Counted from the first letter of the stretch, positions 6,303 to 51,719 are shown. The stretch is 64,000 nucleotides of DNA from Podarcis liolepis (GCA_965112155.1 OZ218109.1); one strand, 5' to 3'. Notes: generated by a model not told the origin, from the sequence alone. Numbers and translations are program-made.

Positions 6303-7912
6303 TCATAGAAAGCTTTCACAGAATCCTAAAATTGTGGATTGGAAGGGACTCAGAGGACCATCCAGTCCAACCCCCTGCAATGCAGAAATCTCAACTAAAG
6401 CATCAGTGACAGATGGCCATCCAACCTCTGCTTTAAAACCTGCAATGAAAGAAAGTCCACCACCTTCTGAAGGAGTCTGTTCCAATGTCAAACTATTGCG
6501 TGGACAGGCGGAGTCCCCAGATCCTGCATGGTTCCCCCGTCATGTGGAATAACGACTCAAGACAACGTGCTATGGGATTAAATTGGCCACAACTTTATTA
6601 AATTTCAAATGTGGGTAGACCTTGGCTCAGGCATTGGGCATCCTCCCTCCCCGGTCCCCAGCCGGGGACCTAGGGAGCATCAGGGTTATCCAGTGTGTGG
6701 GGGGGGGGGGATGGGCCGGCTCTGGAGAACATATGTTCAAGCAGAGATAGCCGCCCCCGTAACGCTGCCGCCGCAGGAGAGAGCAATGACGACCTTTCGG
6801 TGTACGACCAAAGCCTCCCTTCAGAAAACCCCTTTAACGGGGAACCCTGGTATCGCCGCCGCAAGAGGAAGATGGACGAAAGGATTCCGCCCAAGGCCTG
6901 ATACCACCAAAGTTGTGACGTTTTGCTACGGGAAAGGCGAAACCTGCCAATGCAGGGAAATTCCTTTCCGGCCCTTTAACAGCGACCTTAACGTAGCAGC
7001 GCCCGCATACCTGTGAAGAAAAGTTAACCTGCAAAACCTGTGAAGAAAAGTTAACCTGCAAAATAAGGCATTAACTGAGGGTGGGTAGGGTGGAAGAAGC
7101 TCTGGAGCCAAGTGAGGATTCCTAGGTAAGATCCTCCCTCTATTGTGTGGGCAGGTAATCCCTCCCCTACCTGGCCTGGTCTCCTTGGCAACGCTTCCCC
7201 CAGGTGGGATTGGACAACTGACTGAGGTAGGCGGAGACCTCCAGGTATCCCACCTGAGGGAAGGCAAAGCCAAGCCTATGCTGTTGGAGCCACTCCAGAT
7301 CTAGGGGCTGCACGCGTCCACGCAAAGGGCGCCCCCCGTTTTAAGCGGGGAGCGGTCATTCTTACTGTCATGAAGTTGTTCCTGACGTTTAGTCAGAATC
7401 TCCTTTCTTATAACTTGAATCCATTGGTTCAAGTGCTACCCTCCAGAGCAGGAGAAAACAAGCTTGCTCCTTCTTCCATGTGGCAGCCCTTTAGATATTT
7501 GGCAATGGCCATCATATTTCCTCTCAGTAACCTCTTTTCCAGGCTAAACATATGCAGATCCCTCAACTGTTCTTCATAAGTCTTGGTTTCCGGACCCTTG
7601 ATCATCTCGCATGCCCTCCTCTGCACATATCTCAGCCTGTTGATATCTTTCTTAAATTGTGGTGCCCAGAACTGTTCTGTGGCACCCAGGTGTAGTCTGA
7701 CCAAGGCAGAATAGAGTGGTACTATTACTTCCCTTGATCTGGACGCGATACTTATGTTGATGCAGCCTAGAATAGCATTAGTTGTTTTTTGTTTTGTTTT
7801 TTGCTGCTACTGCTGCTGCATCACACTGTTGACCCATGTTAAGCTTGTGGTCTATTAAGACCCTAGGTCCTTTTCACATGTGCTACAGGTCTCCACCATC
7901 CTATAATTGTGC
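6303..7912 (-). mobile_element. CR1 LINE 3' fragment (RT C-terminus and 3' UTR), split by element A at 6496-7357
   Basis: ORF 7429-7704 reads QFWAPQFKKDINRLRYVQRRACEMIKGPETKTYEEQLRDLHMFSLEKRLLRG, typical of the CR1 ORF2 end. 6303-6495 is the CR1 3' tail, and the two halves join as ...TGTCAAACTATTCTTACTGTC. Confidence 0.9.
6496..7357 (-). mobile_element. Element A: unclassified non-coding structured mobile element, CpG-rich and probably young
   Basis: Inserted cleanly into a CR1. Inverted repeats TTGCGTGGAC (6496-6505) and GTCCACGCAA (7316-7325) are followed by the hairpin CGCCCCCCG-TTTTAAG-CGGGGAGCG. AATAAAGTTGTGGCC lies on the minus strand at 6585-6599. It shares motifs with 45229-46024 and 50908-51719. 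Confidence 0.85.
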
Positions 7913-8424
7913 ATAACAGTTCATTTGCTGTTGATTAATTCAGTGTCAATTTCTCTTGAAATTTCAAGTCAATTATGTTTTTATTATTTTCAATAAATCA
8001 AGTGCACATAAGCTTTATTTCCAGTTATCTTCAGTAGACCAGAGACACTCATCCATCATAGCACATATTTCTCAACCTCTGACTACTTACCTTGTGGTGA
8101 TTTGGGGGGGAAAGTATCCCTTCTTTCTTTTTGCAATCTCAGGAACATTCATTGTCCTCACTACCTTTCATAGGCAATATAGAGGAGAACCAATTAACTA
8201 CAAAGTGGCCAGATTGCAGTATGTTCCAGATTACTCTTTTATTGAGTTAGCTGTTCCAGACAATTCCAGCTACCACACTTTATTAAGCCAAGCCCTTTTT
8301 GCAAAGGAGGGTTGGACTTCCAATGAAGAGCAGCTTTTACATTAGCAGCATAAATGTGGGCAACCACAAAGATTAACTACATGGAGTATATACATGGCTC
8401 TACTTACTCTTCTTGAATCTGCCT

Positions 8425-8560
8425 TAAATCCCAGTTTCAATCTCCAGCACTGCAAAGACTGGGAAAGACTTCCTGTCTGAAACTCCAGGAAACTACTGTC
8501 GATCACTGTATACAATACTAAACTAGAGGAGCGAATGGTCTGACTCAGTATATGTTCCTA
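8425..8560 (+). mobile_element. Partial Squam2-like SINE
   Basis: GGGAAAGACTTCCTGTCTGAAACTCC...ACAATACTAAACTAGAGGAGCGAATGGTCTGACTCAGTATATGTTCCTA matches the tail of the copy at 35876. Confidence 0.65.
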
Positions 8561-9334
8561 ATTGTTTTGTTGACTGAAGGAAGGTCTGAATATTCACTGC
8601 CCGTTTGCTGTCCCTTGTTATCTCAGTTTGCAAAGTCTAATAAACTCTGAGTCGAGGCTAGAAATCTCTGAAGACCTCCGCCATTGTTTTAAATTTAGTC
8701 TTCCAACTCCCCCGCTACTGACTTTGTATATATTTTCACAAGTGGGCGAGCATGCCGTTTTCACTCACCAAAACAGCACAAGGTATCATCGACAAGAAGC
8801 CATCAGGCTGTGAGGCTGACCTTTTCTTATATTCCTGCAATGAAACTATTCATGGCTGAATGTCATTCTAGAGCATCACAGGGACTTCCTTCCATAAAAG
8901 AGTGTGTTGGTCATAAAAAGGCAAGAAAAAGAAAAGTCACAAATACACTCCATGGCCTGCAAGCATTCACAAAATCAACTCCTTACCTAAACCTTTCAAA
9001 AATAATCCCCTACTCCCCTTTTCCACATGAGCTTCAATTTCTGGCTCCAGTGACAACCGGGAGGAAGGGGGAAGGGAGGTAGCAAGGGAGGGGACAGAGG
9101 ACCTGGAACTTCCATTTAAAATGCAGACAAATCTGCCTTTTCTGCTTGATGGTCTGTAACATTTCCATGTAGTGCACTTTGTATGGCAGAATAGCTGCTA
9201 GTAATAGAATTCTCTCTCAGTGGAGGTTAATTACTTCTTGGCTGCAGCAAAATAAATTTGCTGTCAAGATCAGTGACAGGAATATGCCAGTGTCACTATT
9301 TTTACCTGTGGTTTTAATTCACTGTTAATTTCTG

Positions 9335-9369
9335 ACACACACACGTGTGTGTGTGTGTGTGTGTGTGTG
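9335..9369. repeat. (CA)n/(TG)n head-to-head microsatellite
   Basis: ACACACACACGTGTGTGTGT..., an alternating purine-pyrimidine palindrome. Confidence 0.9.
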
Positions 9370-9582
9370 TTTGATGGACTGGTTTCCTAAATAGCCAGCC
9401 CTCCACTCTACCCACTAAAAGAATAGGTCAGATAGACAGTAATGTAGAATGAAGACAGGTGTTAAAAGCACATTTGCCCCTCCCTTTCAAAAAAGATTAA
9501 CAGCAGCAATTTGATATGTGTCTAACCTGAGATGAGTCCCACTGGGTCCAATGGGGCTTATGCCTAAGGAAGTAGGTCTGGG

Positions 9583-9748
9583 GTTTATTTACTTATTTAT
9601 AGCACTTATACTCCTCCTTTAATACCCACAACAACTTTGTAAGGTAGGGTGGGCTGAAGAGGCTGTGACTGACTCAAGGTCACCCCATTAGCTTCATGGC
9701 TTAGTGGGGATTTCAATCCTGGTCTCCCAAGTCCCAGCCTGACACTTT
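9583..9748 (-). mobile_element. Older CORE SINE (MIR/Squam3-like)
   Basis: GTGACTGACTCAAGGTCACCC (CORE, reverse orientation), a B-box-like region and an (AAAT)n tail. Confidence 0.7.
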
Positions 9749-10474
9749 GAATAAGATTCAAAATAAAGTGTAGGAATAAATTGTCAAGTTTCATGTCTGG
9801 GAAAAGCAAACCGCAGAGTTGCCTAAGGAGTCACTAGTTGGGCTCTTCTTATCATTCAGTGTATGTTGTGCTTTCTCCCATAGTATGCCTTCATGTCTGC
9901 TAATCTTTGCTGCCTTGATCTTAGCTAGCAGAGGAGGCCATTCATCACCATATTTCTGATTAAAGCTTGGAAGCCACAGCACTCTGCAGTGTGCCTTGGA
10001 AGTTAGAGCTATGAAGAAAAAGCACTTTCTGCTATTTTCTGGATGCTTGTGGCTAACGTTCAGATAATTACCAGAGGAAGTGCTCTCCATTCTTTGACGG
10101 CCGAGTGCCGTGGTTCTGCTGGAGTTCCGGTCCTTCTCTCTACTCACATGTCACTTGGTCTGACTATGGATAGGCAGCCTTTTGGACCTGGGTTGCTTTG
10201 GCTTTTTAACATTCCATACCATGTCAGGCTTTCCTGGTGGCAATCTAGGCAAAAATCGTGTTCCTAATGAAGATGCATTGTAGGGCAGCTTGTGCCCTGT
10301 AGTGAAAATACACAACAGTAAGATGTGGTTAGCCTCAACTGAAAACACAGCAGCGAGCGTTAAATGCCTCTGTGGACTTCATTCATTGCTATTTCATTGC
10401 AATACTCTTGCATATAATGGCAACCCAAGAAAAATCAGCGCTATGGAGACACAGCCAAGAGACTCTTTTTAGTA

Positions 10475-10715
10475 CAGTGGTACCTTGGTTTATGAACTTA
10501 ATCTGTTCCGGAAGTCCATTCTTAAACCAAAGCATTCTTAAACCAAGGCATGCATTCCCATAGCAGCAGGGGACTCAATTTACACTCAATAGGAAGTGGA
10601 ACACATTCTGCTTCCAAGGCAAAGTTCACAAACCAAAACACCTACTTCCGGGTTTGTAGCGTTCATAATCCAAGTTGCTTATAAACTAAAATGTTCTTAA
10701 ACCAAGGTACCAGTG
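10475..10715. mobile_element. Tc1/mariner-superfamily (pogo/Tigger-like) MITE
   Basis: TIR CAGTGGTACCTTGGTTT...AAACCAAGGTACCAGTG, with TA on the left flank. Confidence 0.85.
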
Positions 10716-10756
10716 TGTGTGTGTGTGTTGTATCGCATGCCTCTGATCCCACAGAG

Positions 10757-10892
10757 CAGAGTTTCCCAAACTTGGGTCTCCAGCTATTTTAGAACTACAG
10801 CTCCCATCTTCCCTAGCTAGCAGGACCAGTGGTCAGGGATTATGGAAACTGTAGTCCAAAAACAGCTGGAGACCCACGTTTGGGAAACTCTG
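10757..10892. mobile_element. hAT-type palindromic MITE
   Basis: TIR CAGAGTTTCCCAAAC; 8-bp TSD CCACAGAG/CCATAGAG. Confidence 0.9.
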
Positions 10893-13239
10893 CCATAGAG
10901 CATCACTGCATCAGGCATCAACATATTTTCTGGTGGTAATAATAGGAAGGAAAGAAAGAAAATGTGAAAGAAGTCCAAACTGTGCCTTAGAGCTTGAGCA
11001 ACAGGAGCACCCCTTCTTCTCCCTGAAGCCCTGAAAAGTGTTGAACACGCACCTGCACAAACCCTCTATCTTCCATCTGGAGCAGTTGTCCACATTCAAG
11101 GACACATTGCATCCAGGCAAAACACCCAAGGAAAGCACAAACTGGGACTACTAATGGCTATGGCCCAAGGAGGAGGAGGAGGAGTGTGGCTGGGAAGGGT
11201 CTGATCTTGGGAGAGTCCTAAGAGACCCCAAAGGCCACATATGGGCTAGAGGCCTCAGGTTCCCCATGTGTACAGTAGAGTTTTGGGGTGCCTTCTGAGC
11301 AGTGAGATAGCCACTGGGCATTGCTGGGAGTGGGGAAGAATGACCCCCAAAGGCACTGTCAGTGAGTTGAGGTCCAGAGTCATACTACTACTCGATTTGG
11401 GGTGATTTACTCCCTCCACTGTAAACCCCCAATTCCCTATCTGGTGCTAGACAGGACGGTCCCCCAACTCCTTGAAGAAGTATTGAAAGGACTCAGAGAA
11501 CTACAGCAGGAGGACAGCATTAGAAAGCCCACTCTTGTGAACCTCATTCCACTCATGGTCCACAGGATCCAAACCACTGTTTTCTTAGAAATCTTACAGA
11601 GTTAGTGCTACAGGCTCTTTAATAATAGACATTATATTGAAGCGGAAATTGTAAAAAAATAGAATTTTAAAAATGGAAAAGGAATGTTGGGCAACTTTAA
11701 ATTCATCTTTCAGTTTTAAGCAGGAGGATCAGACCCTGCATATTGCTGCTCCTTCATGAGGGACGCAAAAGAACAGGATCCTCCTAGTCTTGCATGGTGC
11801 TGCTTCAGGGATCAGGAAGAAGGAAAGATAGTTATCCAGTAGGTCCATTATTTTTGCGGTTTCTGCTTCTTCTGTTTCATGCCTGCCTCGACTTCCTGCC
11901 TTTCACCCCACCCCCTGCCAGACCCAGATGGCTCTGTCCCTGAGCCAGCCAACATGCCCTTTAGCAGTCCAGAGCTGTTTCAACCAGACTTGAACAAGGC
12001 CTAGATCCCTCTAATTAGGTTCAGTTTGGCTTGGGATTTGGGCCTCAGCCGAATCCAGTGCACAGCCTATGTTCTGACATCCCAGTAAGATGGGGTGGGG
12101 AACCTGTAGCCCACCACACATCACTGGACTCTTCATTCCCATCACTTCATTCTGGGATGATGCGGAAGTTGTAGTCCAACATTAGTGTGGGCGCAAGGCA
12201 CTGAACTTGCCACAAATGATCACTTACACATTTGCCAAGGACCAGTTCTAAACCGGACAGTTTTCCAGGAATGTGACACCACTTCTTCTCATGGCATTAG
12301 CTACTGATTGCAACATGTCATCACAACAACGTGCTTTCTGGTTTGGCATAAAGGCGATGAAGGCAATTACATTTTCAAGATGCTGGCATTTTTAGGTAAA
12401 ACACCACCAACACCAAGTGAAGAAGGTAATCAGGATTCTTGTTATAATGTAAAGTGGAAATATAAAGATGGGCTGATTATTTTGTGTTAGGACCAAGCGT
12501 TTCATTCTATCACCTGTCTTTTTTCATCACTTCCACTGTGATATTCTGGAATGGAGTGGCTGACATGTAATAGAAAGCTATGGAGGGAGCATTAATGCAT
12601 TCTTTAGCTCAGGCAGTCCATGTTGTCTCAGAAGTAAATGAAAAGTCTCCCAATCTTTTCATTTACTTTGGAGACAACATGTTCTGAGAGGAAAGATTTT
12701 TGCCAGCTGTTTTAGTTTTAAATTACAGTGCCATGATTGGTTTCATTTCTAGGTCACCCATAGCAACCATAACTTGAAAGCATGAGATCAGTTCTGCTTT
12801 CATTTAGAAATCTTCCCAGTTTCCGCTTCAAACACTGTTTTATAAAGCTTCCCTCTCTGTAGTTCCTGCTTTGCAGTGTTTAGTCATCCGCTTTCCTCCT
12901 TGTATTTTAATAGTCTGTTGAAATTGTGGCTTGTCACAGTGACCTAAAGAAAATATAATACTTGACATCAGGAAATGTATAGCTGTGGGAAATTAAGTAG
13001 TTGGGAAGTTGGCTTGGACCGTTATGCTACATCTGGGCAATCAATGATGAAGAAACATTTTTATTTGTTTGAATTTCCCAAATTCCTGCTGTTGTTATTT
13101 TTGTACACTTTTATGCTGCTGTTTTCCTGACTTTATGTTTTATTTTTTACGGCATTTGTTTTCTTTGCGGCATGCTGCTTTGCGATTTTTTAAAAAATAT
13201 TAAGCAGATTATAGATACAATAAATTATATAAATATATA

Positions 13240-13460
13240 CAATGGTACCTCGGTTTACAGGTGCTTCAGGTTACAGATGCTCCAGGTTACAGACTCTGTT
13301 AACCCGGAAGTATTACCTTGGGTTACGAACTTTACCTCAGGATGAGAACAGAAATCGTGCGGCGGTGGCGCGGTGGCAGCGGGAGGCCCCTTTAGCTAAA
13401 GTGGTACCTCGGGTTAAGAACGGACCTCCAGAACAAATTTTTTAATCCGAGGTACCACTG
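13240..13460. mobile_element. Tc1/mariner (pogo/Tigger-like) MITE
   Basis: CAATGGTACCTCGG...CCGAGGTACCACTG flanked by TA; the body matches 13729-14319 and 16262-16483. Confidence 0.9.
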
Positions 13461-13728
13461 TAAATAGCAACTAGCTCAATGCACTACTAGTGGAAGCCAA
13501 CATAAGGATTCCTGCTACCATAGCAGGACTCCTTCCCTGTTCTCCCACATGCACCTACTGTGCAAATCCCAAATCTGCTCTGGGGGGTCGGGAGAACATC
13601 AGAACAGCATAAGGGATAAGGAAGAGAGGAAGTTGTTCTATTGGGTAAACAGAAATGCTTGCACAGGTGGAATGATCTCCTCAGTGCCACGGTGGATACA
13701 ACCCTAAATATATAAATAAAACAACATA

Positions 13729-14319
13729 CAGTGGTACTTCGGGTTACATACGCTTCAGGTTACAGACTCCGCTAACCCGGAAATATTACCTCGGGTTAAG
13801 AACTTTGCTTTAGGATGAGAACAGAAATTGTGCTCCGGCGGCGTGGCAGCAGTGGGAGGCCCCATTAGCTAAAGTGATGCTTCAGGTTAAGAACAGTTTC
13901 AGGTTAAGAACAGACCTCCAGAACGAATTAAGTACAGTGGTGCCCCGCAAAACGAATGCCTCGCAAGACGGAAAACCCGCTAGACGAAAGGGTTTTCCAT
14001 TTTTGAGCTGCTTCGCAAGACGATTTTCCCTATGGGCTTGCTTTGCAAGACGAAAACGTCTTGCGAGTGTTCCGATTTTTTTTCGCTTCCCCCCCTTTTT
14101 CTAAGCCGCTAAGCCGCTAATAGCCTTTTAGCCGGTAATCCGCTAAGCCTTTAATAGCCGCTAAGCCTTTAATAGCCGCTAAACCGCTAATAGCGCTAAT
14201 CCGCTAAGCTGCTAATAGGGTTGCTTCGCAAGACGAAAAAACCGCTAGATGAAGAGACTCGCGGAATGGATTATTTTCGTCTTGCGATGCACCACTGGAC
14301 TTAACCCGAGGTACCACTG
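13729..14319. mobile_element. Tc1/mariner MITE hosting a nested MITE
   Basis: TIR CAGTGGTACTTCGGGTTA/TAACCCGAGGTACCACTG with a TA TSD. Confidence 0.9.
13935..14297. mobile_element. Nested Tc1/mariner MITE (second subfamily) with internal GCCGCTAA tandem repeats
   Basis: TIR CAGTGGTGCCCCGCAA/TTGCGATGCACCACTG inserted at a TA of the host MITE. Repeated CGCAAGACG motifs and a GCCGCTAA array at ~14102-14216. Confidence 0.85.

Positions 14320-15533: not shown

Positions 15534-15534
<1 letters not shown>

Positions 15535-15564
<30 letters not shown>
15535..15564. repeat. (CA)n microsatellite
   Basis: Direct inspection. Confidence 0.95.
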
Positions 15565-15565
<1 letters not shown>

Positions 15566-15975: not shown

Positions 15976-16104
15976 TTTCCAGGCTTGGCATGATCTCTCC
16001 CCCCTCCCCAGTCAGTTCCAACTCCTACACTTTCCTTTCCACACTGCTTAAGAAGATGCCTTTGGGGTGTTTCCAATTCTCATATGAACAAGCTGTTCAC
16101 ATTT

Positions 16105-16700
16105 GGGTACCTGGCAGGATGGAAAGAACTGAAAGGGGTTCAGAAGAGGGCAGCAAAGATGGCTGGGGAGGGGGGAAGAAGTCTTATGAGGAAAGGCAGA
16201 AGGAACTCAATATGTTTCTCCTGAAGAGGACGAGGTAGGGCATGGCAGCACTCTTCAAATACAGTGGTACCTTGGGTTAAGTACTTAATTCATTCTGGAG
16301 GTCCGTTCTTAACCTGAAACTGTTCTTCACCTGAAGCACCACTTTAGCTAATGGGGCCTCCTGCTGCTGCCGCACCAAGCACGATTTCTGTTTTCATCCT
16401 GAAGCAAAGTTCTTAACCCAAGGAACTATTTCTGGGTTAGCGGAGTCTGTAACCTGAAGCATATGTAACCCGAGGTACCACTTTACCTGAAGGACCCATC
16501 ACATAAAAAAGGACAAAGACTTGTATTCTCTGCTGCCATGGACTGGATCTGATAGCCTTAAATTTTGTTGAACTTTAGGAGAAACTTCTTAATGGTAAGA
16601 GCTGTTTGACAATAGAACCAATTGCCTAAGAAGGTGGGCTTTCCCTCATTGGAAGTCTTTGAGAATGTACTAGTTCTAGATTGCCTACATAAAACACAGG
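16105..16700 (+). mobile_element. Old CR1 LINE 3' fragment split by a MITE at 16262-16483
   Basis: Contains GTTCAGAAGAGGGCAGCAAAGATG (VQKRAAKM), TCTTATGAGGAAAGG (SYEER), CTCTTCAAATA|CCTGAAGG and AGGAGAAACTTCTTAATGGTAAGAGCTGTT. Confidence 0.75.
16262..16483. mobile_element. Tc1/mariner (pogo/Tigger-like) MITE, opposite orientation to the copies at 13240 and 13729
   Basis: TIR CAGTGGTACCTTGGGTTA...TAACCCGAGGTACCACTT with a TA TSD. Confidence 0.9.
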
Positions 16701-18243: not shown

Positions 18244-18602
18244 TTATTTAAACTAAGGTTACGAGATGTCCCTGTTCTCCAGGGACAGTCCCCGGATTTA
18301 CAAATCAGTCCCCTGACAAAATCCATCCTCTTCAACTGAAGTTAAAAAGTGTCCCTGGATTCATTGGAAAAAATTTGGTAACCTTAATTTATACCCCACC
18401 CAGCTGGCTGGGTTTCCCCAGCTACTCTGGGCGGTTCCCAACAGAAAATTAAAAGCACAATAAAACGTCAAACATTAAAAACTTCCCTAAACAGGGCTGC
18501 CTTCAGATGTCTTCTGTAAGTCAGATAGTTGTTTATTTCCTTGACATTTGAAGGGAGGGCATTCCACAGGGTGGGCGTGACTACTGAGAAGGCCCTCTGC
18601 CT
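18204..18602 (-). mobile_element. L2 LINE 3' end with a TAA-repeat tail, interrupted by a hAT MITE
   Basis: Shares AAACAGGGCTGCCTTCAGATGTCTTCT...GGGAGGGCATTCCACAGGG with the copies at 33881, 42372, 47660 and 58203. Confidence 0.8.
18254..18386. mobile_element. hAT-type MITE
   Basis: TIR TAAGGTTAC/GTAACCTTA; 8-bp TSD ATTTAAAC/ATTTATAC. Confidence 0.85.
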
Positions 18603-20899: not shown

Positions 20900-21595
20900 A
20901 CACCAGTTTTGTCTTGTTTTGTTTTTTAAAAAGGCCTCAAAAATTTCCATATCATTTGAATGCGAATTTCCCCAATATGCACATTTTTGTATGCAACTTT
21001 GCCTAATCTACACATGTTTTCATGCATTTCCTCAGATATAACGTATTTAAATGTTATTTTCAGTACTATCTTTATGTTCCCCTAAAATATTCATTTTTTT
21101 CCTGTTGTTGTTGTTGAAATGCATTTGCAAAATTCAAAGAACAAATTTTGAAGGATAGCCATGATTCCATTGTTTCAGGATCTATGAATTAGGTAAAAAG
21201 ATAAAGATACCCCTGACCGTTAGGTCCAGTCACGGACAACCCTGGGGTTGTGCGCTCATCTCACTCTATAGGCCAAGGGAGTCAGCATTTGTCCACAGAC
21301 AGCTTCTGGGTCATGTAGCCAGCATGACTAAGCCGCTTCTGGCGAATCAGAGCAGCGCACGGAAACACCGTTTACCTTCCCACCAGAGCGGTACCTATTT
21401 ATCTACTTGCATTTGATGTGCTTTCAAACTGCTAGGTTGGCAGGAGTAGGGACCGAACAATAGGAGCTCACCCTGTCACGGGGATTCGAACCGCTGACCA
21501 TCCGATCAGCAAGCCCAAGTCTCAGTGGTTTAGACCACAGCACCACCCACGTCCCGTAGGTTAAACTGTATGAATTTCCCCTCCCATTCCCAAAT
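20900..21595. repeat. Old unclassified interspersed repeat, here split by a Sauria SINE
   Basis: The motifs AATATGCACATTTTTG...GCAAAATTCA...TTTGAAGGAT recur at ~31370-31720, ~34420-34690, ~49640-49970 and ~61985-62430. Confidence 0.55.
21191..21555 (-). mobile_element. Sauria SINE (Squam1)
   Basis: The reverse strand starts GGGACGTGGGTGGTGCTGTGG, has the B-box GGTTCGAATCC and a degenerate (ACCTTT)n-like tail. Confidence 0.9.
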
Positions 21596-28180: not shown

Positions 28181-29429
28181 GTGGAGGGGGCCCATTGGCA
28201 GTAGTCTCTGTTTTTAGTTCTTCAGTGCTTCACAGGGAGACCATCTCACTTGTTGAAAAGGCCAATGGACCTTGAGAAACATAAGTGTATATGAAATGCA
28301 GCATAGCAAAGCACAGAAACAGGGCAACACAAAGCATTGTGATCTGACTTGGAGGGACTTGATCTGACTTGGAGGGAGAGTCATGATTTGACTTGGGAGT
28401 GGCCAATTTTACTCCTCCTTCAGCCCCTATGTAGAACCAATGTACACTCTTGTAAGAAAAATGTTAAGTGGGGTCTGGAAAAACAAACTGTTATGTTAAA
28501 CAGACTCCTACACCTTTGTTTGCAAAGTTCATTAGCTTTGGAAAATGGGAGTTTGCTGACCACTGTACCTTGGTCTAGAACCTAGAAGTGGTCAGTAACA
28601 TAAAATATTCCTAGAAGGAAGAGAGGAAGAATCACCAGAAGAGTTTCAGATTTGGCCGTTCCTCTGTTTTAGAGTCTCCCTCCCCTTTTCCCTTTGGTTT
28701 GCTCTGCCTTTTATTTGCTTTGGAATATTTCCCTTCACTGCACTACTCTGGTAATTGTAACACATTAGGGGCAGGGGGCATAACATATTTACCTATCTCC
28801 GCAGTTCCCTTTTCTTCTGACTTTCTGCACACAAACTGAGCACAGCAACAATTGTGTTGTGAGGACAACAGAACACCCTGGGACGCTCCTGTGTTTAACC
28901 AAGCAGGAACAACTTATTTGACATCAGCAATCAAAAACATCCAGAGCCCTGCTAGGCCCATAAGAGCCGGCTGTGTTATTTTATATTCCATGCCCCTTCA
29001 AAACATTGCATGAGAAAAGGAAAGGGGCTAAGTCGAAGAGCTCTTTTTAGTTAATGAACAGACTTCGCTCTGAAAATAAGAAAGAAATGGTGCGTGTATT
29101 TGTTTAGAGGAATGATAATGGAATCGGTGTCTCATGACATGTTTACTTCTGTTCTTTAAGAGGTCCTTAAGGTATCTGGCCCATCCTCATGCACTTAACA
29201 TTATTTGCATAAACTCAAATCACATCAAGGGCTGTGTGCTTGGTAACAGTTTCTTTCGACCCATTAATTTTTCTTAGAAGAACCCTGGCTTTTCTTAGCA
29301 TCCATGTTAGGAACACAACAGAATTTCCTCATCCAGAAAGTTGTGTGGATTTTCTACCCATGACTCACCCATGAAACACTAAGGGAGGCTACTAGTGTGC
29401 AAAGCTAAGGTAGCTGGACACAATACCGC

Positions 29430-30902: not shown

Positions 30903-31038
30903 CAGTGTTCCCCAACCTTGGGCCTCCAGCTGTTTTTGGACTACAACTCCCATCATCCTTGACCACTGGTCTTGCTAGCGAGGGATGATGGGAGTTGTAG
31001 TCCAAAAACAGCTGGAGGCCCAAGGTTGGGGAACACTG
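30903..31038. mobile_element. Young hAT-type palindromic MITE
   Basis: Long, near-perfect TIRs starting CAGTGTTCCCCAACCTTGGG; perfect 8-bp TSD CTTTAGGA at 30895-30902 and 31039-31046. Confidence 0.95.
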
Positions 31039-33880: not shown

Positions 33881-34230
33881 ATAATAATTATAATAATTTA
33901 TTTATTTATACCCCACCCATCTGGCTGGGCTTTCCCAGCCACTCTGGGCGGCTTCCGACAAAATATTAAAATACATTAATGCATCAAACATTAAATGCTT
34001 CCCTAAACAGGGCTGCCTTCAGATGTCTTCTAAAAGTCTGGTAGCTGTTGTTCTCTTTGACATCTGGTGGGAGGGCATTCCACAGGGTGGGTCCCACTAC
34101 CGAGAAGGCCCTCTGCCTTGTTCCCTATAACTTGGCTTCTCGCAGTGAGGGAACCGCCAGAAGGCCCTCGACGCTGGACCTCAGTGTTCAGGTAGAACAA
34201 TGGGGGTGGAGACACTCCTTCAGATATAGA
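33881..34230 (-). mobile_element. L2 LINE 3' end
   Basis: Closely similar to 42372-42800 in reverse orientation, with a TAA/TAAA-repeat tail. Confidence 0.85.
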
Positions 34231-35875: not shown

Positions 35876-36043
35876 GAGGGCCATAGCTCAATGATAGAGA
35901 ATCTGCCTCGCACACAGAAGTTCCCAGGTTCAATTCCTGGCATCTCTAGTTAGGGCTGAGAGACCCCATTTGAAATCCTGCCAATCAGTGCAGACAATAC
36001 TGAGCTAGATGGACCAATGGCCTGATGCGGTATAAGGAAGCTT
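35876..36043 (+). mobile_element. Squam2-like tRNA-derived SINE; its tail resumes at 36646
   Basis: TAGCTCAATGAT A-box, GGTTCAATTCC B-box and CR1-like tail GAGCTAGATGGACCAATGG...TATAAGGAAGCTT|CCTATATTC. Confidence 0.8.
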
Positions 36044-42371: not shown

Positions 42372-42800
42372 ATTGGCTCCCAGTACGTTTCCGAGCACAA
42401 TTCAAAGTGTTGGTGCTGACCTTTAAAGCCCTAAATGGCCTCAGCCCAGTATACCTGAAGGAGCGTCTCAACCCCCATCATTCAGCCATCATCCACTGAG
42501 GTCCAACTCCAAGGGCCTTCTGGCGGTTCCCTCACTGAGAGAAGTGAGGTTACAGGGAACCAGGCAGAGGGGCTTCTCGGTAATGGCGCCCACCCTGTGG
42601 AAGGCCCTCCCATTAGATGTCAAGGAAATAAACAACTATCTGACTTTTAGAAGACATCTGAAGGCAGCCCTGAAGGCAGGGAAGTTTTTAATGTTTGATG
42701 TTTTATTGTGTTTTTAATATTCTGTTGGGAGCCACCCAGAGTGACTGGGAAAACCCAACCAGATGGGCAGGGCATAAATAATAAGTTATTATTATTATTA
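42372..42800 (+). mobile_element. L2 LINE 3' end
   Basis: Translates to HWLPVRFRAQFKVLVLTFKALNGLSPVYLKERL, the canonical L2 ORF2 end, followed by UTR and an AT-repeat tail. Confidence 0.9.
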
Positions 42801-45228
42801 GATGAGACCAGAAGCCCATCTTATCCAGCATCCTGTTTTGTACAGTGGCCCATCACATTCAAGGAGGCCTACCAGCTGGGTGTCAGCAGTTCCTTTGGCT
42901 CATCTAGTCCAACATTCTGTTCTCACAGTGACCAACCAGAGACCTGTGAGAAGTCCACAAGCAAGACCTGACTGCAACACCACTCAATCTCCCCTCCAGC
43001 AGTTTTCAGTGGCTGTTATTCACAAACACACTGTCTCCAAGAGTGGAGGTATCAGGGTTAGTAGCCATCAAGAAATAGCACTCCAACTCCAAACCAAAAC
43101 ATTGTAATCTGACGTGAGCTTTACTCTACAGAGCAAGGAAAATTGAAATCAAACTTCCTGCACCTCCAGTTGAACCTTGAGCCCAAGCTGTTTGCAGCCT
43201 AATTATCCTAAAGGAATATTTCCTTTTAATTTTAAGCAGCTGCTCCTCTCCTATTTCGTCCCCAATGAAACATGAGGGTTTTATGCAAAACCTCCACTGA
43301 GCATGTGCAAGTGTGCGTTTTCTTTCTCCGCATATGAATTTCTTCTAATATCTGTAACTGGCCACAGTGGAATCCCTGCACATCTTTCTCCCGGACCTGT
43401 TTAATGAAATCTGCAGTTCCCCACTCAGATTCATTTTGGATACCCCCTATGTTTCTTCTTTAAATACCAGTGATCTAGACACTAAATGTGCAGAAGTGGT
43501 CTCCCATAACGTTAATGCATATCTCTATTCCTTTAGTTATCACATGGGTGGCCTCATGAGTGGCATAATATGTTGGAGCACTCTCTCTCTCCTGCTGTCC
43601 TGATGAAAGTATTCGGCTCACAATGAAAATTGAGGCAATAGGCAACATTACAGCATGCTTGGCTCAGCTTGTTGGCAGTGACGATGAAGCATTCATTGCC
43701 ACTATGGAACAGATGAAATCAAAAGCACAGGCTATTAAACTATACACTACCATTGGGGGCTGTAAGTCTTTTCTGCAAATGACACCTTTGTTATTTTCCT
43801 AAACGAGTTCATCAACGTATAGCATTCGAATGCACTAAATCACAGAGGCATTTAGGAATGGATAAACAGATGGACAAATAACAGATTTATTTTATTTTCT
43901 TCCCCTTCTCCTTTAAATATCTTCCTTCCTCCTACTCCACAAAAGGGACATGATCCAATTCAAGAGAATCATAGTATTTCTTGTTGGTGATACTTCTCAT
44001 CATATATATATTTCTGTTTAGTTTTGTTTTGTGTTTTGCATCGCCCCAATTTATCACTATTGTTTGACAATAGTATGTTCCAGCTAATCATTCTGTCGCT
44101 TGTCTTTCACTTTCACCCATCCATCTGCAGATTTTAAAAGTACACATTTCCTCTGGTATTCTTCCCTCTGATTTTTAAAATACTGTTTTTCTACAAATTT
44201 CCTGACAATGCTTAAAAAAAAGAACATCTGAATTTCTGTCACTCAGCATGATCTTTATTTTCTTGCTCTCCACTATTATTTGTTTCAAATGACTAACATT
44301 TAGGGTGAAATACTGAACTAATCACTATCCAAAAGCTGTAATAAACTCTCCAGTGGAAGTGAGTCCAGTTGTTGCCTGGTCAGCGGAAGGGTGCCTTTCT
44401 TACATCTGCTGCAGTTAGCCTTAAAACGGCAGCTTGCCATTTGCAGAACATCCTCTGTAGGTATTTTTTGCATTGCTCTTTGTTAATCAAGCCCAGTTCC
44501 ATTGCTGTAGCTTACCAAAGCTGCTGACCTGTTCTTTTCCCCCATAGTTAATTTTCCAGCATCAGTTACACCAATAAATCTTAACTAATGTACATTTAAT
44601 AGAATATATTGCATGAAAGATGGGGAAGGAAAGAAGGCACTTTAGGGGATTCTTGGTGTAATTAAAGGCCTTTTAAAGAATTAATTGAGGAGCTAATTTA
44701 GGGAGGAATGTTCAGATGAAAAGGGTCTTGAATCCGTAATTTTGGATGCAGCATTATGCCTGAATTATGGTGGTATTAGCAGTGAACAGGGCACAGCACT
44801 GACTTTGCTAATCTCCCACCTAGTGTTTATTCCTGTACTTAAATCACCCTAGTGATGAGAATCAATGCACAAGCACCAAATGTAAGCCAGTAGTGTGTTT
44901 TAGCCATTGTGTGATACTTCTGCAAGTGACCAGAAGCCATTACGCAATATCTCATGTGTATATAATGGAGAGATAGCCTTAGGCTGTTCATCAGACAGAG
45001 GAGCTGATCGTCATTCTATACTTGCCCCTTTTGGAAAAGCAAGCAACCAACAGCATGGCTAGACATGCAGGCATCTCCCATAGAGGGCTGAGACAGCAGA
45101 GAAGTACACAGCCTCCAAACAATCAAAGACAAAGCATCATGAAATAAATCAAGACAAAAAAGTGTTTTGCTGCAAGTGTGTGTTTCCATGCAGGAGCTAT
45201 ACAGTAGGAGATCACACAGCCTGTAAGA

Positions 45229-46024
45229 AAGCGTGTCCTCCCTAAAAAAGGGCATGTGTTGTGGTGAGACCTGGAGACTGACCTCCTGATTGTGGGTGGG
45301 TATATTGGACAGCCACAACACCCGACTGGTAGGTCCCTTGTTGCTGGGTTTAATCTGGCCAATGGGGAGCTGTTTAAATGGACTGAGGGACCTATATATA
45401 CCTATGCATGTGACCCAGAGCTTCCTCTTTTGGCTTGTGCATCGGAACACCCGCCCACCTCTCCCTATATTTAGGGCTTGTTGCGCTTGACCTTGCTATG
45501 CCGTCATGTGTCATCTGTCGTTGGGACAGGGGCACAGCAGGAATTTTCCCCACTTGGCTGATTGGTTGTTGCCATTTGGGTTTCGCCTGCTGCGTAGCAA
45601 ATCGTCACAACTTGTAAGGTTGTGGATAGGCACTGGTTCAGGTGATAGGGATGGGAGAACGGTCTCACCATCCCTATGTGAAGGGTATTCCGTTAAAGGA
45701 ATCCAGGGACTCAACTTGGTTTGGTCAACCCTTGAGAGGGGGTTGTGCCCGTGCCTGAGTCCAGGAGAGCATCTGGGGAGCGTACATAGTCCATTCCTGG
45801 GCTTTCCACCTACCTCAGGTGTTCACCCTTGGCTGACCTATGATAGAGCTCTGGGTCAGCACTACCTGCAAGGGTGCAGGGAGCTAGTCGAACCAGAGCC
45901 TATGCAACCACTCACTTTCTGTAATCAATAAAGTTGAGGCCTAAATTCTGCCAAAAACCAAAACTAAAATTTGAGTCAAATGTGTTTTTATTTAGGGGGG
46001 AAGTCTGTGGGTCTGAACACACAA
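45229..46024 (+). mobile_element. Element B: unclassified non-coding structured mobile element (A/B/C family)
   Basis: 5' hairpin GCGTGTCCT...AGGGCATGT, imperfect inverted repeats TTGTGGTGAGACC / GGTCTGAACACACAA and AATAAAGTTGAGGCC at 45927-45941. The block 45425-45640 aligns with 51098-51310. Confidence 0.8.
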
Positions 46025-47659
46025 ATAAATGCCTTTTGAAAGGGGAAATCATTGCAAGGGGAGTTGTGTTGCTGTCCCTGATTATGTCACAAACAATATC
46101 CAATCAGTGCTTTTGCCATTCAGTCTACCGGATTCCATTCAGCATTCACAAGAGCAACAAATGTGATGCAGTGGACTTACAGGGTACTTTATGCAATATG
46201 AACAAAGTACCGAGTTTTGGATATTCAAAAAATGTGATGCCCAACCCTCAACAAAAAGGCAGGATGTGTGGAGTGCATGCGACATACGTCATGCGGATGT
46301 GCAGGTTGGGAGGTTGTTGTGTCTGGGAGTGACCTCTGCACAGCTCCCTGGGTGGTCCAACCGGGCTCAGTGTTAGGAGGGGGCTGTGGAGTGACACAGC
46401 GATGTCCCAACTCTTGCACCACTTCCTACAGCACTACAAAGAGCCATGTTTGGGCATGCAGTCTGGGAGACACACAGCACAGTGGAGTAAATAATCCATT
46501 TCCCAAAGTTATTTGTCTTGACTCTTCTTTGGCATATTACTAGCTTCTGTATCAGGTGCTCTGGAACTTTGGGAGCTGAGACTTTCATAAGGGATAAGTC
46601 CTGTAAGTACAAACATGACAACATTGGGATGACAGCGAGTACCCTTGCAAACAGCATCATAATGATCAACCACAGAGACTTAAGTGTGAAGATCTCGGTT
46701 GCTATGAATAGATGTTCTTCTGCATTTCTCCACAAATTATGAAGAGTTGAAATGGCAACTTCTCAGCAGTACATTCACCCTGGAAGTAGAATATTTATAA
46801 GGCAGCTGTGCTCTCTAGCTAACCAAGAACATTATGTCTGGAAACATCTGGTTCAGAGCTACACTTGAGGGATGACCCGGGAAGATTTCATTGTAGACAA
46901 ACTTTTATATTTGCAATAAAATATATTTGAACAGCATAGCCCAAACACTGATAATCTATGATCTCACTCCACTGTTTTTGCCACCGATCAAGGGGTTTAG
47001 CTGGGTAGCTAATTATGAGTTTCTTGCAAAGTCTAATCCATCCTCAGAACAGATGCAATTCATGTGCATTGCTTATCTACTTTCCTGATTGCAACATTTA
47101 ATATTGCACAGCAACATGTAATAATTGGTAGCTGCCAGTGGATGCATACTCCATGATGTTCATTAGATTACAGCATGTATTGCAGGCAATGTGTTAGGAT
47201 GGTTGAACAATGGATGAAAACCACCATTTCCAGAAAGGTATGTTAAAGTAAAGTCTTCTGTAATCCATAGTGCATTGTAAAATTGCATGACAAAAACACA
47301 GATGAAAAGTGAAATAACAGAATTTGACATATCCTGGCAGAGCCACTGGTTCCTGATGACACACTCTTTCTTCCATTTAGATGCTGACAGTATCTCAACA
47401 GAAATCTATTTGACAATAATGCCCTACAGAAAACTTAACTATGTAAACACTATAAAAAAATGCAACTATCCAAAACCGTCTGAGATGTCTTAACCTGCAT
47501 TTATCTGGCTCACAGCAAAAAATAAATAAAAAATGGATAAACCACCCTCCGTCTATGGGCTTTGACTAAGATTTATCTGAAATCATTGGCAACCACAGTG
47601 AAAGCCCACATGATATTTTGTATCACTTTGGTTGACTTCATTATTCATACATACGGTAC

Positions 47660-47852
47660 ATACATACATACATACCCTGTCTATCTAGCTGGGTTTCCCC
47701 AGCCGCTCTGGATGGCTCCCAACAGAAAATTAAAAGCACAATAAAACATCAAACATTAAAAACTTCACTAAATACGGCTGCCTTCAGATGTCTTCTAAAA
47801 GTCAGAGAGTTGTTTATTTCTTTGACATCTGGTGGGAGAGTGTACCACAGGT
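47660..47852 (-). mobile_element. L2 LINE 3' end
   Basis: Same family as 18387-18602 and 33881-34230. Confidence 0.8.
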
Positions 47853-50282
47853 CAACAATATTGTGCTAACACACAATTTGTATGATTTTTGTATGGCTTG
47901 GGAAATACAAGTTTTTCTTTTTCCAAATATGGAGTACCAACCATTGTATGCTTCTCCTTTCAAGCTGCCCTGGGTGCAACCTGAAACCTGCAAAGCATCT
48001 AACAGGCCCTGTACAATCTCCTCTGCCATTTTATCAGAAAACTTCGATAAAATGCAAATTCCAACCATAGCTTCAGCATTAGCCAATCCCCACTCCCTGT
48101 TGTTTTTTTTAACCATCTATCCTAATGAAGAGTTCTGAATTCTTGCACTCTATTTTGTCAATATTGTGGTTGGCATAAAAAAAGTATTGCCCTAATGTGA
48201 ATTTTGGGGAGGGGTCCCCCCCTTAATGGGCTATCATGACTACCTTTGCTTGTTGCTTCTTTTTTTAGTTAAAGGTCAGTGTCTCCTTTCCTAGAGATTT
48301 AAAGTACCTGCTACACTTCACTGAATGTTACTGAATGGAGTAGGTAAAAATAGAAAAAAAGAATTTTAGCATGCATGATTTAAGAAAGGGACCATTTAGG
48401 TATCCTGTTACTTCCAAGATGTTTGGCAATTAGCAATTCAATTCAGGATTTTGCAAAATTATTTTTATCTTGATATGCTCAAGGAGTAGGACTGTATCAG
48501 AATGCATTCATTGCAACAGCTGGACATGTTATCAACACTCCCCCCTTGTTATTCTGAATGAAAAATTGGAAAGAGTGCTTCCATTTATATCCCATAAGTA
48601 ATGTTGCATATAGAAAGACACACACGCGCACACACCCCGCAATCTTTGCAACTCACCCACATCTAAGCTAAAAATACTCTGAAGTCATGCTGCTCTTTTA
48701 AATCATACTGCGAAACTGGATGACCTCCTATGGAGATTTCTCTTTAACACAAGTAATTATAGTCTTCCAGCTGCCCTTTGACTCTCAGTGGACCAAGGGC
48801 AGTCCTTCTTGGAAATGAGCTTAATTAATTCTCCGCAATTGGTATATATTCTTTCAGCCATGAGGTGGCAGCTTGTTTCCACAGGAATTTACTCCTGAGC
48901 TTTGAGTTGATCTGCTTCTATTGCCCAGGTTGCTCCTGTTTCAGAAGCCTGAGCCCACTGAGCCACACGGGCGAAATGTGGCAAGAGGCAGGAGCTGCAA
49001 CAAAATGTTGTAGTGGACAATATGTTCCTGTTTGGGGTTCCAGCCATTCCATTCCATTCCCCTCTCCACGTTTTTCCATTTCCCCCATCACAACAGCCAA
49101 TCAGCATTCCATGCGCACTGAGCTTGCTCAGTACCCATGAGAATGTTTGGAGAGATGGCTGTATCCCCATAGCCCAAGGATACATCCCCCTTGTATGTGG
49201 GTGATGCTCTTTTGGCTCTCCACATGGATCAGCCATAAGAGAACTGAGGGGGGAAAACAGCATATATGAGTTTGACAACATGTGAGCTTTCTTATTGGAA
49301 ACTTACACAAATGTCTAACAATATAAGAAGTGAAGTTTACAGAGGCATGGTCCGTATTGCTGAATATCCTGTATACAGGACGACCCGATACAGTTATATG
49401 GGGTGGGGGAATGGAAGCAGCTAATAACACTCTCACCAGCAGGAAATGAGAACCTTCATGGATGAGGAGCAAGCAGATGGCCCAGTTGAAGGAAGCCCTC
49501 AATGATGAAGCAGTTCATACACAATCACAGCAGCATAGTTTCAAGCATCACACAGGCTTTGCTTTGTGTAGGGAAACCTGTCAATGTCAATTTGTCGTTT
49601 CTCCATGGTTAACGTCTCCACATTTCAGCATCACTTCAATAATGTCTTTTCAAAGTCTGCAAGGAAATTTGTGAGCATTTTGGTACAAAAATGCGTAGCT
49701 TTGTATGCAACCTTGCCCAATATGCACATTTTTGCAAAGCCATTTTCCTGAATGTAAAGCATGTTGGTATGTTATCTTCCCTAACATATGCATTTGTAGA
49801 CACAGTTTATCTCACAATATGCATCTTTGTACGTATTACTTGGTACAGATTAATTGCCGAATCTAAAGAAGAGCACATTTCAAAGGATGTCTGTGTTTCG
49901 GTTCATGTATTGATTCAGGAAGTGCAAATTAACCTTTAATGTGAACTGCATCAAATTTTCCTCCCGTCCCTGGCTGTGTTGCTGGTGTTTTGCATTAAGG
50001 ATCAACAACATGGTTTAGGTCAACAGTAAGCTGGGAAGGAGAGACCCTGTTGCAGCAGACCAATAAAGATCAACAGCTTGCCTTGCTTTCTTGGTAGCCT
50101 CCATTTGTATCTCTAACAGATAGTGGACCTCAAGGGATCCTAAGGACTCAGCTACATTGGCAGCCAAAAAGCCCTTTATATGTGTTGTTTATGCATTCTA
50201 ACACTGTGGCACCAGATGGCACTGTGGAGTTCTGTTTTTTGCTAACCCGATTTCTCATACAAGGTTTGTGATGCATTTAACT

Positions 50283-50418
50283 CGGGCTTCCTCAAACTCG
50301 GCCCTCCAGATGTTTTGAGACTACAGTTCCCATCATCCCTGACCACTGGTCCTGCTAGCTAGGGATCATGGGAGTTGTAGGCCAAAAACATCTGGAGGGC
50401 AGAGTTTGAGGAAGCCTG
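50283..50418. mobile_element. hAT-type palindromic MITE
   Basis: TIR CGGGCTTCCTCAAACTC/GAGTTTGAGGAAGCCTG with an ACTACAGTTCCCATCATCC core; the TSD is degenerate. Confidence 0.85.
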
Positions 50419-50711
50419 GTTTAAACAAAACACTTCTTTGATTTGTCTAGATCCAGCCTACGTCCACCAGCTTCGACTGAACACAGTGTAAATTCCCCTT
50501 TTAGAAATACACATGAAGGTTGGAAGAGGAGTGGGTGGCATTCACCAGAAATGGGGAGGGGGACTAAGACCTGCGAGACCAGGGTTCAAATTTCCACTCA
50601 ACCACAAAGTTTACTGGGTGACCTTGGGCCAGTCACTGCTTCTCAGCCTAGCCTACCTCACAGAGTTGTTGTGGGGAATAAATGGTGGAGAGAGTGGACA
50701 CCAGGTAAAGC

Positions 50712-50893
50712 ATAGATTGGTGCCCAAATTGTTAGACCTGGGACTTCCACCATGTTTGTGCAGTGTTGAGCATGTAGTTTTTATGTAGTTTTATGTAGTT
50801 TTGTGGTAGTTTTATGTAGTTTTTATGTAGTTTTATGTAGTTTTTCAATTTCATTGTTCCACAAGGGACAATGACAATAAAGATATCGTATAT
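50712..50893 (+). mobile_element. Internally deleted Rex1/Babar LINE fragment with an (ATGTAGTTTT)n minisatellite
   Basis: The peptide LVPKLLDLGLPPCLC (Rex1-type RT motif KL..LGL...LC) is joined to the Rex1-like 3' end CAATTTCATTG...ACAATGACAATAAAG. Tandem repeat at 50771-50845. Confidence 0.6.
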
Positions 50894-50907
50894 CGGGGGG
50901 GGGGGGG

Positions 50908-51719
50908 AGCGTGTTCTCTTTCATAGAGAGCACGTGTTGCGGTGGGGTCTGACAGGCCACCCCACTGTTGCTGGGCGGGTTAGTATGGATGACCATCCAC
51001 AGTGATTGGACGGTTGGGTTACTGGGCAAATTTTGGTGTTGCCATTTAGGGGGAGGGACCAAAGGTTATAAAATCAAGTCACGCAGCACTGACTGGGCTC
51101 TTTTGCTGCGTGCATCGGATCACCCACCCACCCTCCCTCATCTAGGGCTATTGCGTTGACCTTGCTATGCCTGTCATGGGGTCGTCTGCTTTTGGGGCAG
51201 GGGCCTGGTAGGAATTTTGTCCATATGGCTGATTGGCTGGTGCTATTTGGTTTTTGCCTACTGCGTAGCAAATCGCCACAACTTGTAAGGTTGCGGTTAG
51301 GCATTGGTTAAAAAATTGGTTGGTGGAGGGGTAAGGACTGGCGGTGCCTGCCCCTCCAATGCTGCTGCAGCAAGGGAATTCCATTAAAGGAATCCAGGGG
51401 CTTGCCATTCTTTCGTCCATACCCCTGAATGGGGCTTAGGGCCACGCAAGCCCCTGGGAGCATGAAGGGGGGGGTGAGGGTCTGGTGCCGGCTCCATGCT
51501 CTCCCCAATATTGTTTTCCCTTACTGGCTTTCGCTGGAATCCGGAAGTCAGTTCTGTCCCTGGGCGTGGGGACAGATAGTTGGAACCAATGCCTAAACAA
51601 TCACTCACATTTATGTATTTTAATAAAGTTGTGGCCAAAGTTATGCCAAAAACCTTAAACAAAAATTATATGTGAATTGTGAATTATTTAGGGGTGGCTT
51701 GGGGGACCTCAACACGCAA
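50908..51719 (+). mobile_element. Element C: unclassified non-coding structured mobile element (A/B/C family)
   Basis: 5' hairpin GCGTGTTCTCT-TTCAT-AGAGAGCACGT, imperfect inverted repeats TTGCGGTGGGGTC / GACCTCAACACGCAA, TATAAAA at 51067-51073 and AATAAAGTTGTGGCC at 51622-51636. Confidence 0.85.

Follow-up and report, generated by a model that had tools for sequence, protein, structure and literature searches.

Described tyrosine-recombinase retroelements and the Podarcis units

Retrotransposons of the DIRS order integrate by means of a tyrosine recombinase at a 3-bp junction (AAG, AAA or AAT), leaving the same trinucleotide at both ends and no target duplication (PMC3266345, table 3; PMC7192593). 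Ngaro elements also occur as solo A-B repeats, dispersed in genomes in the manner of solo long terminal repeats (LTRs) (PMC8547959), and SIRE corresponds to the A2 and B2 region of VIPER (PMC6681497). Here, three gene-less units of ~800 nt, designated copies A, B and C, are compared with these systems; all three lie in one 64,000-nt stretch of DNA from Podarcis liolepis (GCA_965112155.1 OZ218109.1), referred to as the window. They had been singled out by an earlier reading of the sequence, the original prediction, as a family of mobile elements carrying a conserved structured RNA. The insertion signature and the analogy with described elements, on which the class assignment is based, suggest with a probability of about 0.5 that the units are solo A-B repeats or deletion derivatives of a DIRS-order retrotransposon, most likely a Ngaro-like one. 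The earlier inference that selection on the active ancestors favoured a single-strand fold, in an element that was non-autonomous or in the solo terminal repeat of one, is supported: compensatory changes exceed those of shuffles, a covariance model recovers copy A, Rfam yields no match and the units have no coding capacity.

The Ngaro solo A-B repeats of Cafeteria burkhardae (PMC8547959) and the SIRE/VIPER repeats of Trypanosoma cruzi (PMC6681497) are likewise short, gene-less and interspersed, lack an integrase-type duplication, and carry termination signals at the end opposite their promoter-like signals. The present units differ from them in having no demonstrated parent element, and at ~800 nt they are longer than the 388-nt A+B repeats of Xenopus (PMC9210276). 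AcDIRS1 and AcDIRS2 of Anolis (PMC3266345) share with them a lizard host, a 3-bp junction (AAG, AAA) with identical trinucleotides at the two ends and without duplication, and complementary segments that link both termini. DIRS1-like elements, however, have inverted terminal repeats of 160–170 bp and an internal complementary region beside their genes, whereas the arms described here span 25–40 nt, accompany no genes, and include one arm that lies internal to a terminal hairpin. No published description of a large covarying fold in Ngaro A-B or SIRE repeats was found. Little is known of how tyrosine-recombinase retrotransposons prime, package and complete their replication, and the primer of DIRS-1 reverse transcription is still unidentified (PMC7192593); a covarying fold in the non-coding ends of a vertebrate element would mark cis-acting signals and offer a defined starting point for probing, reporter and retrotransposition assays. 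Should the units be ordinary annotated solo repeats, the finding would shrink to the structural annotation of a known repeat family.

Three diverged copies of one unit

The boundaries of the three units, which differ by only 1–3 nt from those first proposed, are as follows.

6498–7357, minus strand: copy A, whole unit, 860 nt, inside the 3' part of a CR1-type long interspersed nuclear element (LINE); flanks AAT (7358–7360) and AAT (6495–6497)
45231–46022, plus strand: copy B, whole unit, 792 nt; flanks AAA (45228–45230) and AAA (46023–46025)
50909–51717, plus strand: copy C, whole unit, 809 nt; preceded by a 13-G run plus A (50895–50908), followed by AAA (51718–51720)

All family statistics below derive from these copies (n=3), a number below that needed for R-scape-grade statistics. 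The 13 G and the A abut the 5' end of copy C where copies A and B carry AAT and AAA.

Judged by sequence, the three copies are homologous and colinear. An alignment of B with C covers both units over their full length, with 62.6% identity over 779 aligned columns, and identity ranges from 76–90% at the three-way junction and the invariant block described below to 40–56% within the domain enclosed by long-range helices. Conservation is thus maximal in the interior (junction, 76–90%) and not at the termini. Copy A had been placed in the family despite its divergence, and this placement stands: blastn aligns it to B or C in two or three short segments only, but a profile of B and C (nhmmer) recovers it colinearly at 6976–6573 (E 7e-12), and A used as the nhmmer query finds C at E 1.4e-11 and B at E 1.2e-10. 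The 20-mer GTAGCAAAWCGYCACAACTT is identical in all three copies, against a chance expectation of 0.02 matches, and AATAAAGTTGWGGCC is likewise identical in A, B and C.

Searches of the window with the 20-mer and with nhmmer gave no fourth copy; a match at 29338–29357 was not significant and was discarded. Two metagenome contigs from a DNA-pattern scan (L001 and L002) have only the 20-mer in common with the units and were set aside as chance matches, and the scan of viral contigs by DNA pattern returned no further copies. The possibility that B and C are the two repeats of one element was rejected, given their 63% identity, the lack of a protein domain in the intervening 4.9 kb and their unlike flanks.

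A common fold

Each full-length unit was folded separately by minimum free energy (MFE), and the folds are independent across copies. They nevertheless agree on the order of parts that the original prediction had read in all copies: a 5' hairpin, a terminal pairing, a C-rich motif, a three-way junction, and long-range helices around a hairpin domain. The 5' hairpin stands at the extreme end and measures 9–11 bp in the per-unit folds. In the terminal pairing, positions ~30–60 pair with the final ~30 nt over 25–26 bp; compared with shuffled arms, its duplex energy corresponds to z-scores of -5.5, -5.0 and -3.6 across the three copies, and a 40-nt inverted repeat is found in copy A. These outer parts, with the method by which each was located, lie at the following positions.

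7330–7354, minus strand: A 5' terminal hairpin, CGCUCCCCG/CGGGGGGCG (fold)
45231–45257, plus strand: B 5' terminal hairpin (fold)
50909–50935, plus strand: C 5' terminal hairpin, 11 bp (fold)
7297–7325 with 6496–6524, minus strand: A terminal pairing, 5' arm with 3' arm, 26 bp (fold, inverted-repeat search)
45260–45289 with 45992–46021, plus strand: B terminal pairing, 5' arm with 3' arm, 25 bp (fold)
50937–50963 with 51691–51719, plus strand: C terminal pairing, 5' arm with 3' arm (fold, inverted-repeat search)
45447–45465, plus strand: B C-rich motif (read directly)
51121–51139, plus strand: C C-rich motif, upstream of the junction

Copy A carries a perfect 27-bp tandem duplication (7009–7062) between the C-rich motif and the junction, which is absent in B and C.

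The three-way junction is closed by the stem UGCUAYG/CGUAGCA and contains an invariant internal loop, AAUUU(U)Y / UUU(UU)YG, with 3–5 U per side, flanked by two stems that both covary. Two helices reach from the junction region across the unit. Helix Hb pairs TAGGCAYTGG with CCARWGCCTA (12–13 of 13 pairs per copy), and helix Ha joins two invariant blocks, CACAACUU and AAGUUGUG (9–10 of 10 pairs), abutting AAUAAA. Together, they enclose a multi-hairpin domain of ~300 nt beside AATAAA. The hairpins chained inside it include one with the loop (G/A)UUAAA, on a stem of UUCC/GGAA in B and C and of CCCC/GGGG in A. Although this part of the sequence can scarcely be aligned between B and C, the eight helices of the enclosed domain match one to one in their order and their sizes. 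Folding of the core region, compared with dinucleotide shuffles, gave z-scores of -5.1 (B), -5.0 (C) and -2.3 (A).

6907–7004, minus strand: A three-way junction with U-rich internal loop, invariant block CGTAGCAAAACGTCACAACTT at its end (fold, covariance model)
45488–45616, plus strand: B three-way junction and invariant block (fold, covariance model)
51157–51287, plus strand: C three-way junction and invariant block (fold, covariance model)
6889–6901 with 6627–6639, minus strand: A helix Hb (helix table)
6585–6599, minus strand, with Ha partner 6910–6919: A AATAAAGTTGTGGCC, poly(A) signal joined to the 3' strand of Ha (helix table)
45618–45909, plus strand: B closed multi-hairpin domain, bounded by Hb (45618–45639 with 45890–45909) (fold)
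Within 51275–51635, plus strand: C nested helices, Ha being 51275–51284 with 51626–51635, 10/10 pairs (fold, helix table)
51297–51309 with 51584–51596, plus strand: C helix Hb, 13/13 pairs, with the multi-hairpin domain inside (fold, helix table)
6822–6849, minus strand: A GUUAAA-loop hairpin, stem CCCC/GGGG (fold)
45688–45701, plus strand: B GUUAAA hairpin (fold)
51378–51393, plus strand: C AUUAAA-loop hairpin (fold)

At 45604–45624 in B and 51275–51295 in C, CACAACUU can pair either locally with the nearby downstream AGGUUGUG or with AAGUUGUG, ~330 nt away; copy A has no local partner for this block. In the predicted structures of B and C, the two pairings could represent an alternative conformation or a conformational switch.

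Compensatory changes

In the comparison of B with C, the structure was predicted from B alone and projected on C through a sequence-only MAFFT alignment. Among the 270 pairs of B, 34 had changed on both sides in C and remained canonical, 14 were broken by changes on both sides, and 45 were broken by a one-sided change. A null obtained by shuffling columns and refolding (200 replicates) gave 14.0 +/- 3.5 double changes with pairing kept (27 at most) and 74 one-sided breaks. The MFE of the observed alignment was -322.5 kcal/mol, as against -259.8 +/- 8.1 kcal/mol in the column shuffles.

The junction was analyzed with a covariance model of 41 pairs built from B and C only. This model recovered copy A at 7004–6907 over its full length, with 34.7 bits and E 5e-8, whereas the same B and C alignment without structure gave a partial match of 18 bits. 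In the resulting alignment of the A, B and C junctions, 93.8% of cells are paired, and eight pairs carry double-sided changes, compared with 3.8 +/- 1.4 in shuffles (4 of 500 reach eight). When partners were slid by 1–3 columns, pairing in the junction fell to 36–50% and double changes to zero. The alignment of the three-way junction was fitted to the model and leans towards the structure; the explicit helix tables are independent of that fit. They list double changes at five positions of helix Hb. In junction hairpin b, the lower stem is GGAAAGG/CCUUUCC in copy A, CAGCAGG/CCUGCUG in copy B and UGGUAGG/CCUACUG in copy C. That stems differ between copies while pairing persists had been claimed at the outset, and the counts of kept double changes (34 against 14.0 +/- 3.5 between B and C, 8 against 3.8 in the junction) bear this out. 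The covariation is real, and its signal is consistent across every test.

Which strand folds

Composition-corrected fold z-scores are equal on both strands, so a choice of the folding strand by thermodynamics was abandoned as giving no discrimination. The pattern of substitutions differs between the strands. With pairs scored on the AATAAA strand, one-sided changes kept 34 pairs and broke 45; with pairs scored on the opposite strand, they kept 21 and broke 81. On the AATAAA strand, copy B has 32 G-U pairs as against 16 A-C positions, which would be G-U on the opposite strand, and copy C has 49 as against 14; the corresponding counts for strand-neutral helices are 14 to 3 and 10 to 9. The original prediction had assigned the wobble pairs to the AATAAA strand; the excess of G-U pairs and the tolerance of one-sided changes favour that strand, whereas the equal z-scores do not distinguish it. 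The AATAAA strand is moderately supported as the folding strand.

Coding content and expression signals

The units hold chance open reading frames (ORFs) of 135–141 aa, none of which has a Pfam match or a homologue; a search with the 141-aa ORF of copy B as a protein returned no homologues. The description of the elements as ORF-less is therefore correct in substance. Nor had the fold been assigned to a named RNA family, and Rfam agrees: scans of the window at the gathering threshold, and of the three copies at E up to 5, gave only noise, with no match to the hammerhead or HDV-like (hepatitis delta virus-like) ribozymes of retrozymes or Penelope-like elements.

Signals of transcription and 3'-end formation are found in the units. 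AATAAA is followed in A, B and C by a conserved CA ~24 nt after the hexamer and then by a GU-rich tract, and candidate TATA boxes occur in B and C.

45927–45941, plus strand: B AATAAAGTTGAGGCC, then CA ~24 nt after the hexamer and the GU-rich tract TGTGTTTTTATTT (read directly)
51622–51627, plus strand: C AATAAA
45393–45400, plus strand: B TATATATA, candidate TATA box (inferred only, read directly)
51067–51073, plus strand: C candidate TATA box, upstream of the junction

As sequence motifs, these signals would fit a retroelement transcribed by RNA polymerase II.

Insertion signature

Copy A interrupts the 3' part of a CR1-type LINE (end of ORF2 and 3' untranslated region; 7358–7760 and 6330–6494, minus strand), of which a second, diverged copy lies at 16580–16660. 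Alignment of the two flanks of A to this second copy gave the reconstructed empty site ...ACAGTAAG-AAT-AGTTTGACA..., with a single AAT and at most three repeated bases. Copy B has AAA on both sides. A 4–6-bp target duplication was found in none of A, B and C under any choice of boundary, and the window contains no paralogous empty sites for B or C. Joining the ends of copy C yields AACACGC-AAA-GCGTGTT, a palindrome around the trinucleotide, and B is similar (6/8). The left flanks of A and B resemble each other (CAGTAAG-AAT and CTGTAAG-AAA): CAGTAAGAAT at 7358–7367, which in the case of A is host CR1 sequence, and CTGTAAGAAA at 45221–45230 are nearly identical. This may reflect a target-site preference (n=2).

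Assignment to a class

The original prediction had left the class of the element between retroelements and rolling-circle elements. The single repeated trinucleotide in the flanks, the absence of a 4–6-bp duplication, and the conserved poly(A) signal with its GU-rich tract narrow it towards a tyrosine-recombinase retroelement. The conservation of the interior rather than the termini fits a cis-acting RNA. Several observations weigh against a DIRS-order origin. Such elements have either split direct repeats (A1...B1A2B2), which solo units cannot display, or inverted terminal repeats with an internal complementary region, of which the units have only a short terminal complementarity. The evidence for a single trinucleotide comes from two copies and one reconstructed empty site; copy C has GGA on the left, after the 13-G run, and AAA on the right, and the joined termini of A form no palindromic junction. 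Within the window, no reverse transcriptase or recombinase ORF adjoins any copy, the 4.9 kb separating B from C hold neither such an ORF nor a Pfam domain, and the only reverse transcriptase fragment is BovB/RTE-like as judged by eye. The candidate TATA boxes are confined to B and C, and a start there would put the terminal arms outside the RNA of a solo unit. To these may be added the moderate support for the folding strand and the termini of the opposite strand, which match the layout of Helentron and Helitron2 elements.

Were the units non-autonomous Helentron/Helitron2 (HLE2) rolling-circle elements on the strand opposite AATAAA, the fold would be that of a single-stranded DNA intermediate. 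Such elements, HINE and DINE-1 among them, insert between two T residues, are bordered by strings of T and cause no duplication; they have short terminal inverted repeats and a subterminal partner followed by a stem-loop after the right repeat (PMC11417382, PMC4067079), a layout with which the units formally agree. Their reverse-strand borders read ATT...ATT in A, TTT...TTT in B and TTT...TCC in C, no target duplication is present, the inverted arms and terminal hairpin are significant, and the composition-corrected z-scores are equally strong on the reverse strand. Helitron families, however, typically have termini as their conserved parts, whereas the present units are conserved most inside and least at the ends. 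Their arms are imperfect and longer (25–40 nt, compared with 11–18 nt), the G-U/A-C asymmetry favours the AATAAA strand and not the strand with the 3' stem-loop, the invariant AATAAA with its downstream CA and GU-rich tract would have no role, and a Rep/helicase remnant is absent from the window, which leaves this explanation rather improbable. Read as solo LTRs, from an endogenous retrovirus or from an LTR retrotransposon that uses an integrase, the units would be divided into a U3 of ~190 nt, an unusually long structured R of ~520 nt and a U5 of ~75 nt. The size is appropriate, B and C have a candidate TATA box ~165 nt from the 5' end, the ~95 nt from AATAAA to the 3' end include CA and a GU-rich tract, TG and CA dinucleotides occur near the ends together with short terminal inverted repeats, and retroviral R regions can be structured. 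An origin from LTRs is nonetheless very improbable: no 4–6-bp duplication adjoins TG/CA or a nearby boundary in A, B or C, and the empty site of A permits at most three duplicated bases. Moreover, AGCG before TG and AAA after CA are common to B and C, so that the unit reaches past TG...CA; a pairing between the first part of U3 and the last part of U5 would have no RNA to act in, and neither a primer-binding site nor a gag-pol remnant is found between B and C.

A further explanation, which we regard as unlikely, takes the units as stand-alone, unclassified non-autonomous elements whose whole length forms an end-paired, closed single-strand RNA or DNA intermediate, moved for instance by a LINE, a nuclease, or a DDE transposase producing a 3-bp duplication. 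The fold does span the unit from end to end with paired termini, B and C have inverted repeats of 7–8 nt at their exact ends and 3-nt flanks, formally like miniature inverted-repeat transposable elements (MITEs), and no partner element was identified in the window, profile, contig and protein searches. The flanks are, however, not TWA, the trinucleotide duplicated by PIF/Harbinger, and we know of no 3-bp-duplicating superfamily with GCGTG termini; MITEs are simple long hairpins without strand-biased G-U pairs. There is neither a poly(A) tail nor a variable duplication, making LINE-mediated insertion unlikely, and the lack of an Rfam ribozyme makes a retrozyme or viroid-like circle unlikely.

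A possible mechanism

If the units derive from a DIRS-order retrotransposon, A, B and C would be three independent, long-diverged insertions of a non-coding terminal unit. A solo A-B repeat would be what recombination between the split direct repeats of a full element leaves behind; alternatively, the units would be internally deleted, non-autonomous derivatives mobilised by the proteins of the full element. The AATAAA strand would be transcribed by RNA polymerase II and polyadenylated ~24 nt after AATAAA. In this transcript, the Ha blocks CACAACUU/AAGUUGUG and Hb would close the domain of ~300 nt and bring AAUAAA to the foot of the three-way junction. The RNA domain might then act in cis, through control of 3'-end formation or stability or through recognition by the Gag or reverse transcriptase of the element. 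An invariant loop between covarying stems is the pattern expected if a partner reads the loop sequence, and candidate partners are the poly(A) tail, the polyadenylation machinery and the element's own proteins. In a circular or tandem intermediate, the 3' arm, the AAW trinucleotide and the 5' hairpin would be adjacent and could form one compound stem-loop around the trinucleotide, a plausible site for a recombinase that exchanges strands with AAW in the target. It is a doubtful further step to suppose that mobility depends on an undescribed fold of ~500 nt in which long-range helices would clamp the poly(A) site to the U-loop junction, protecting the tail like an expression and nuclear retention element (ENE) or recruiting reverse transcriptase; such a device would be the first in a vertebrate transposon.

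Relation to known structured RNAs

In the ENE of the retrotransposon Copia93/Evade (PMC12501189), as in the junction described here, two stems flank a U-rich internal loop close to the 3' end of the retroelement RNA. In the present units, the loop (AAUUUY against UUUYG) is invariant and the stems covary. The loop has 3–5 U per side, fewer than the canonical ENE with about five per U-run, and it lies ~340 nt upstream of the poly(A) site, near which it is brought by predicted helices only. No Rfam family matched at E up to 5, and hence none of whatever ENE models Rfam includes. Since the loop has 3–5 U per side and Rfam gives no match, membership of the ENE class is not claimed. Clamping of the poly(A) tail by the U-rich junction, if it occurs, would extend to vertebrates the transposon ENEs whose action has so far been shown in a plant retrotransposon (PMC12501189).

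A second resemblance is to the structured R and U5 regions of retroviral LTRs, such as the HIV-1 poly(A) hairpin and the HTLV Rex-responsive element. In both cases, a helix takes up part of AAUAAA, and 3'-end signals are, or in the present units would be, controlled or positioned by a large fold of the repeat region. The units differ from these regions in lacking an integrase-type signature, sequence similarity and an Rfam match.

Genomic setting

The window is repeat-rich vertebrate DNA with short interspersed nuclear elements (SINEs), palindromic MITE-like units, the CR1 LINE and a reverse transcriptase fragment with a BovB/RTE-like motif; it includes a stretch of N at 59102–59818. The fragment, beside this gap, is a 159-aa ORF at 57615–58094 (minus strand) that encodes a C-terminal portion of reverse transcriptase (Pfam RVT_1, E 2.9e-11) and has a motif, YADDTTLMAESEEELK, resembling BovB/RTE LINEs by eye; it was considered as a partner of the units and rejected as unrelated.

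SINE families, each multicopy with 66–90% identity and in both orientations, occupy 18391–18570, 33907–34086, 47672–47851 and 58205–58384, and 21418–21555 and 56632–56769. A tRNA match in Rfam at 35877–35948 (39.5 bits, no ARAGORN call) is probably the head of a tRNA-derived SINE and not a gene. Copies of a palindromic MITE-like element of ~135 nt lie at 30903–31038, 10756–10893 and 50276–50425, and the perfect 56-nt arms of one of them suggest a recent insertion.

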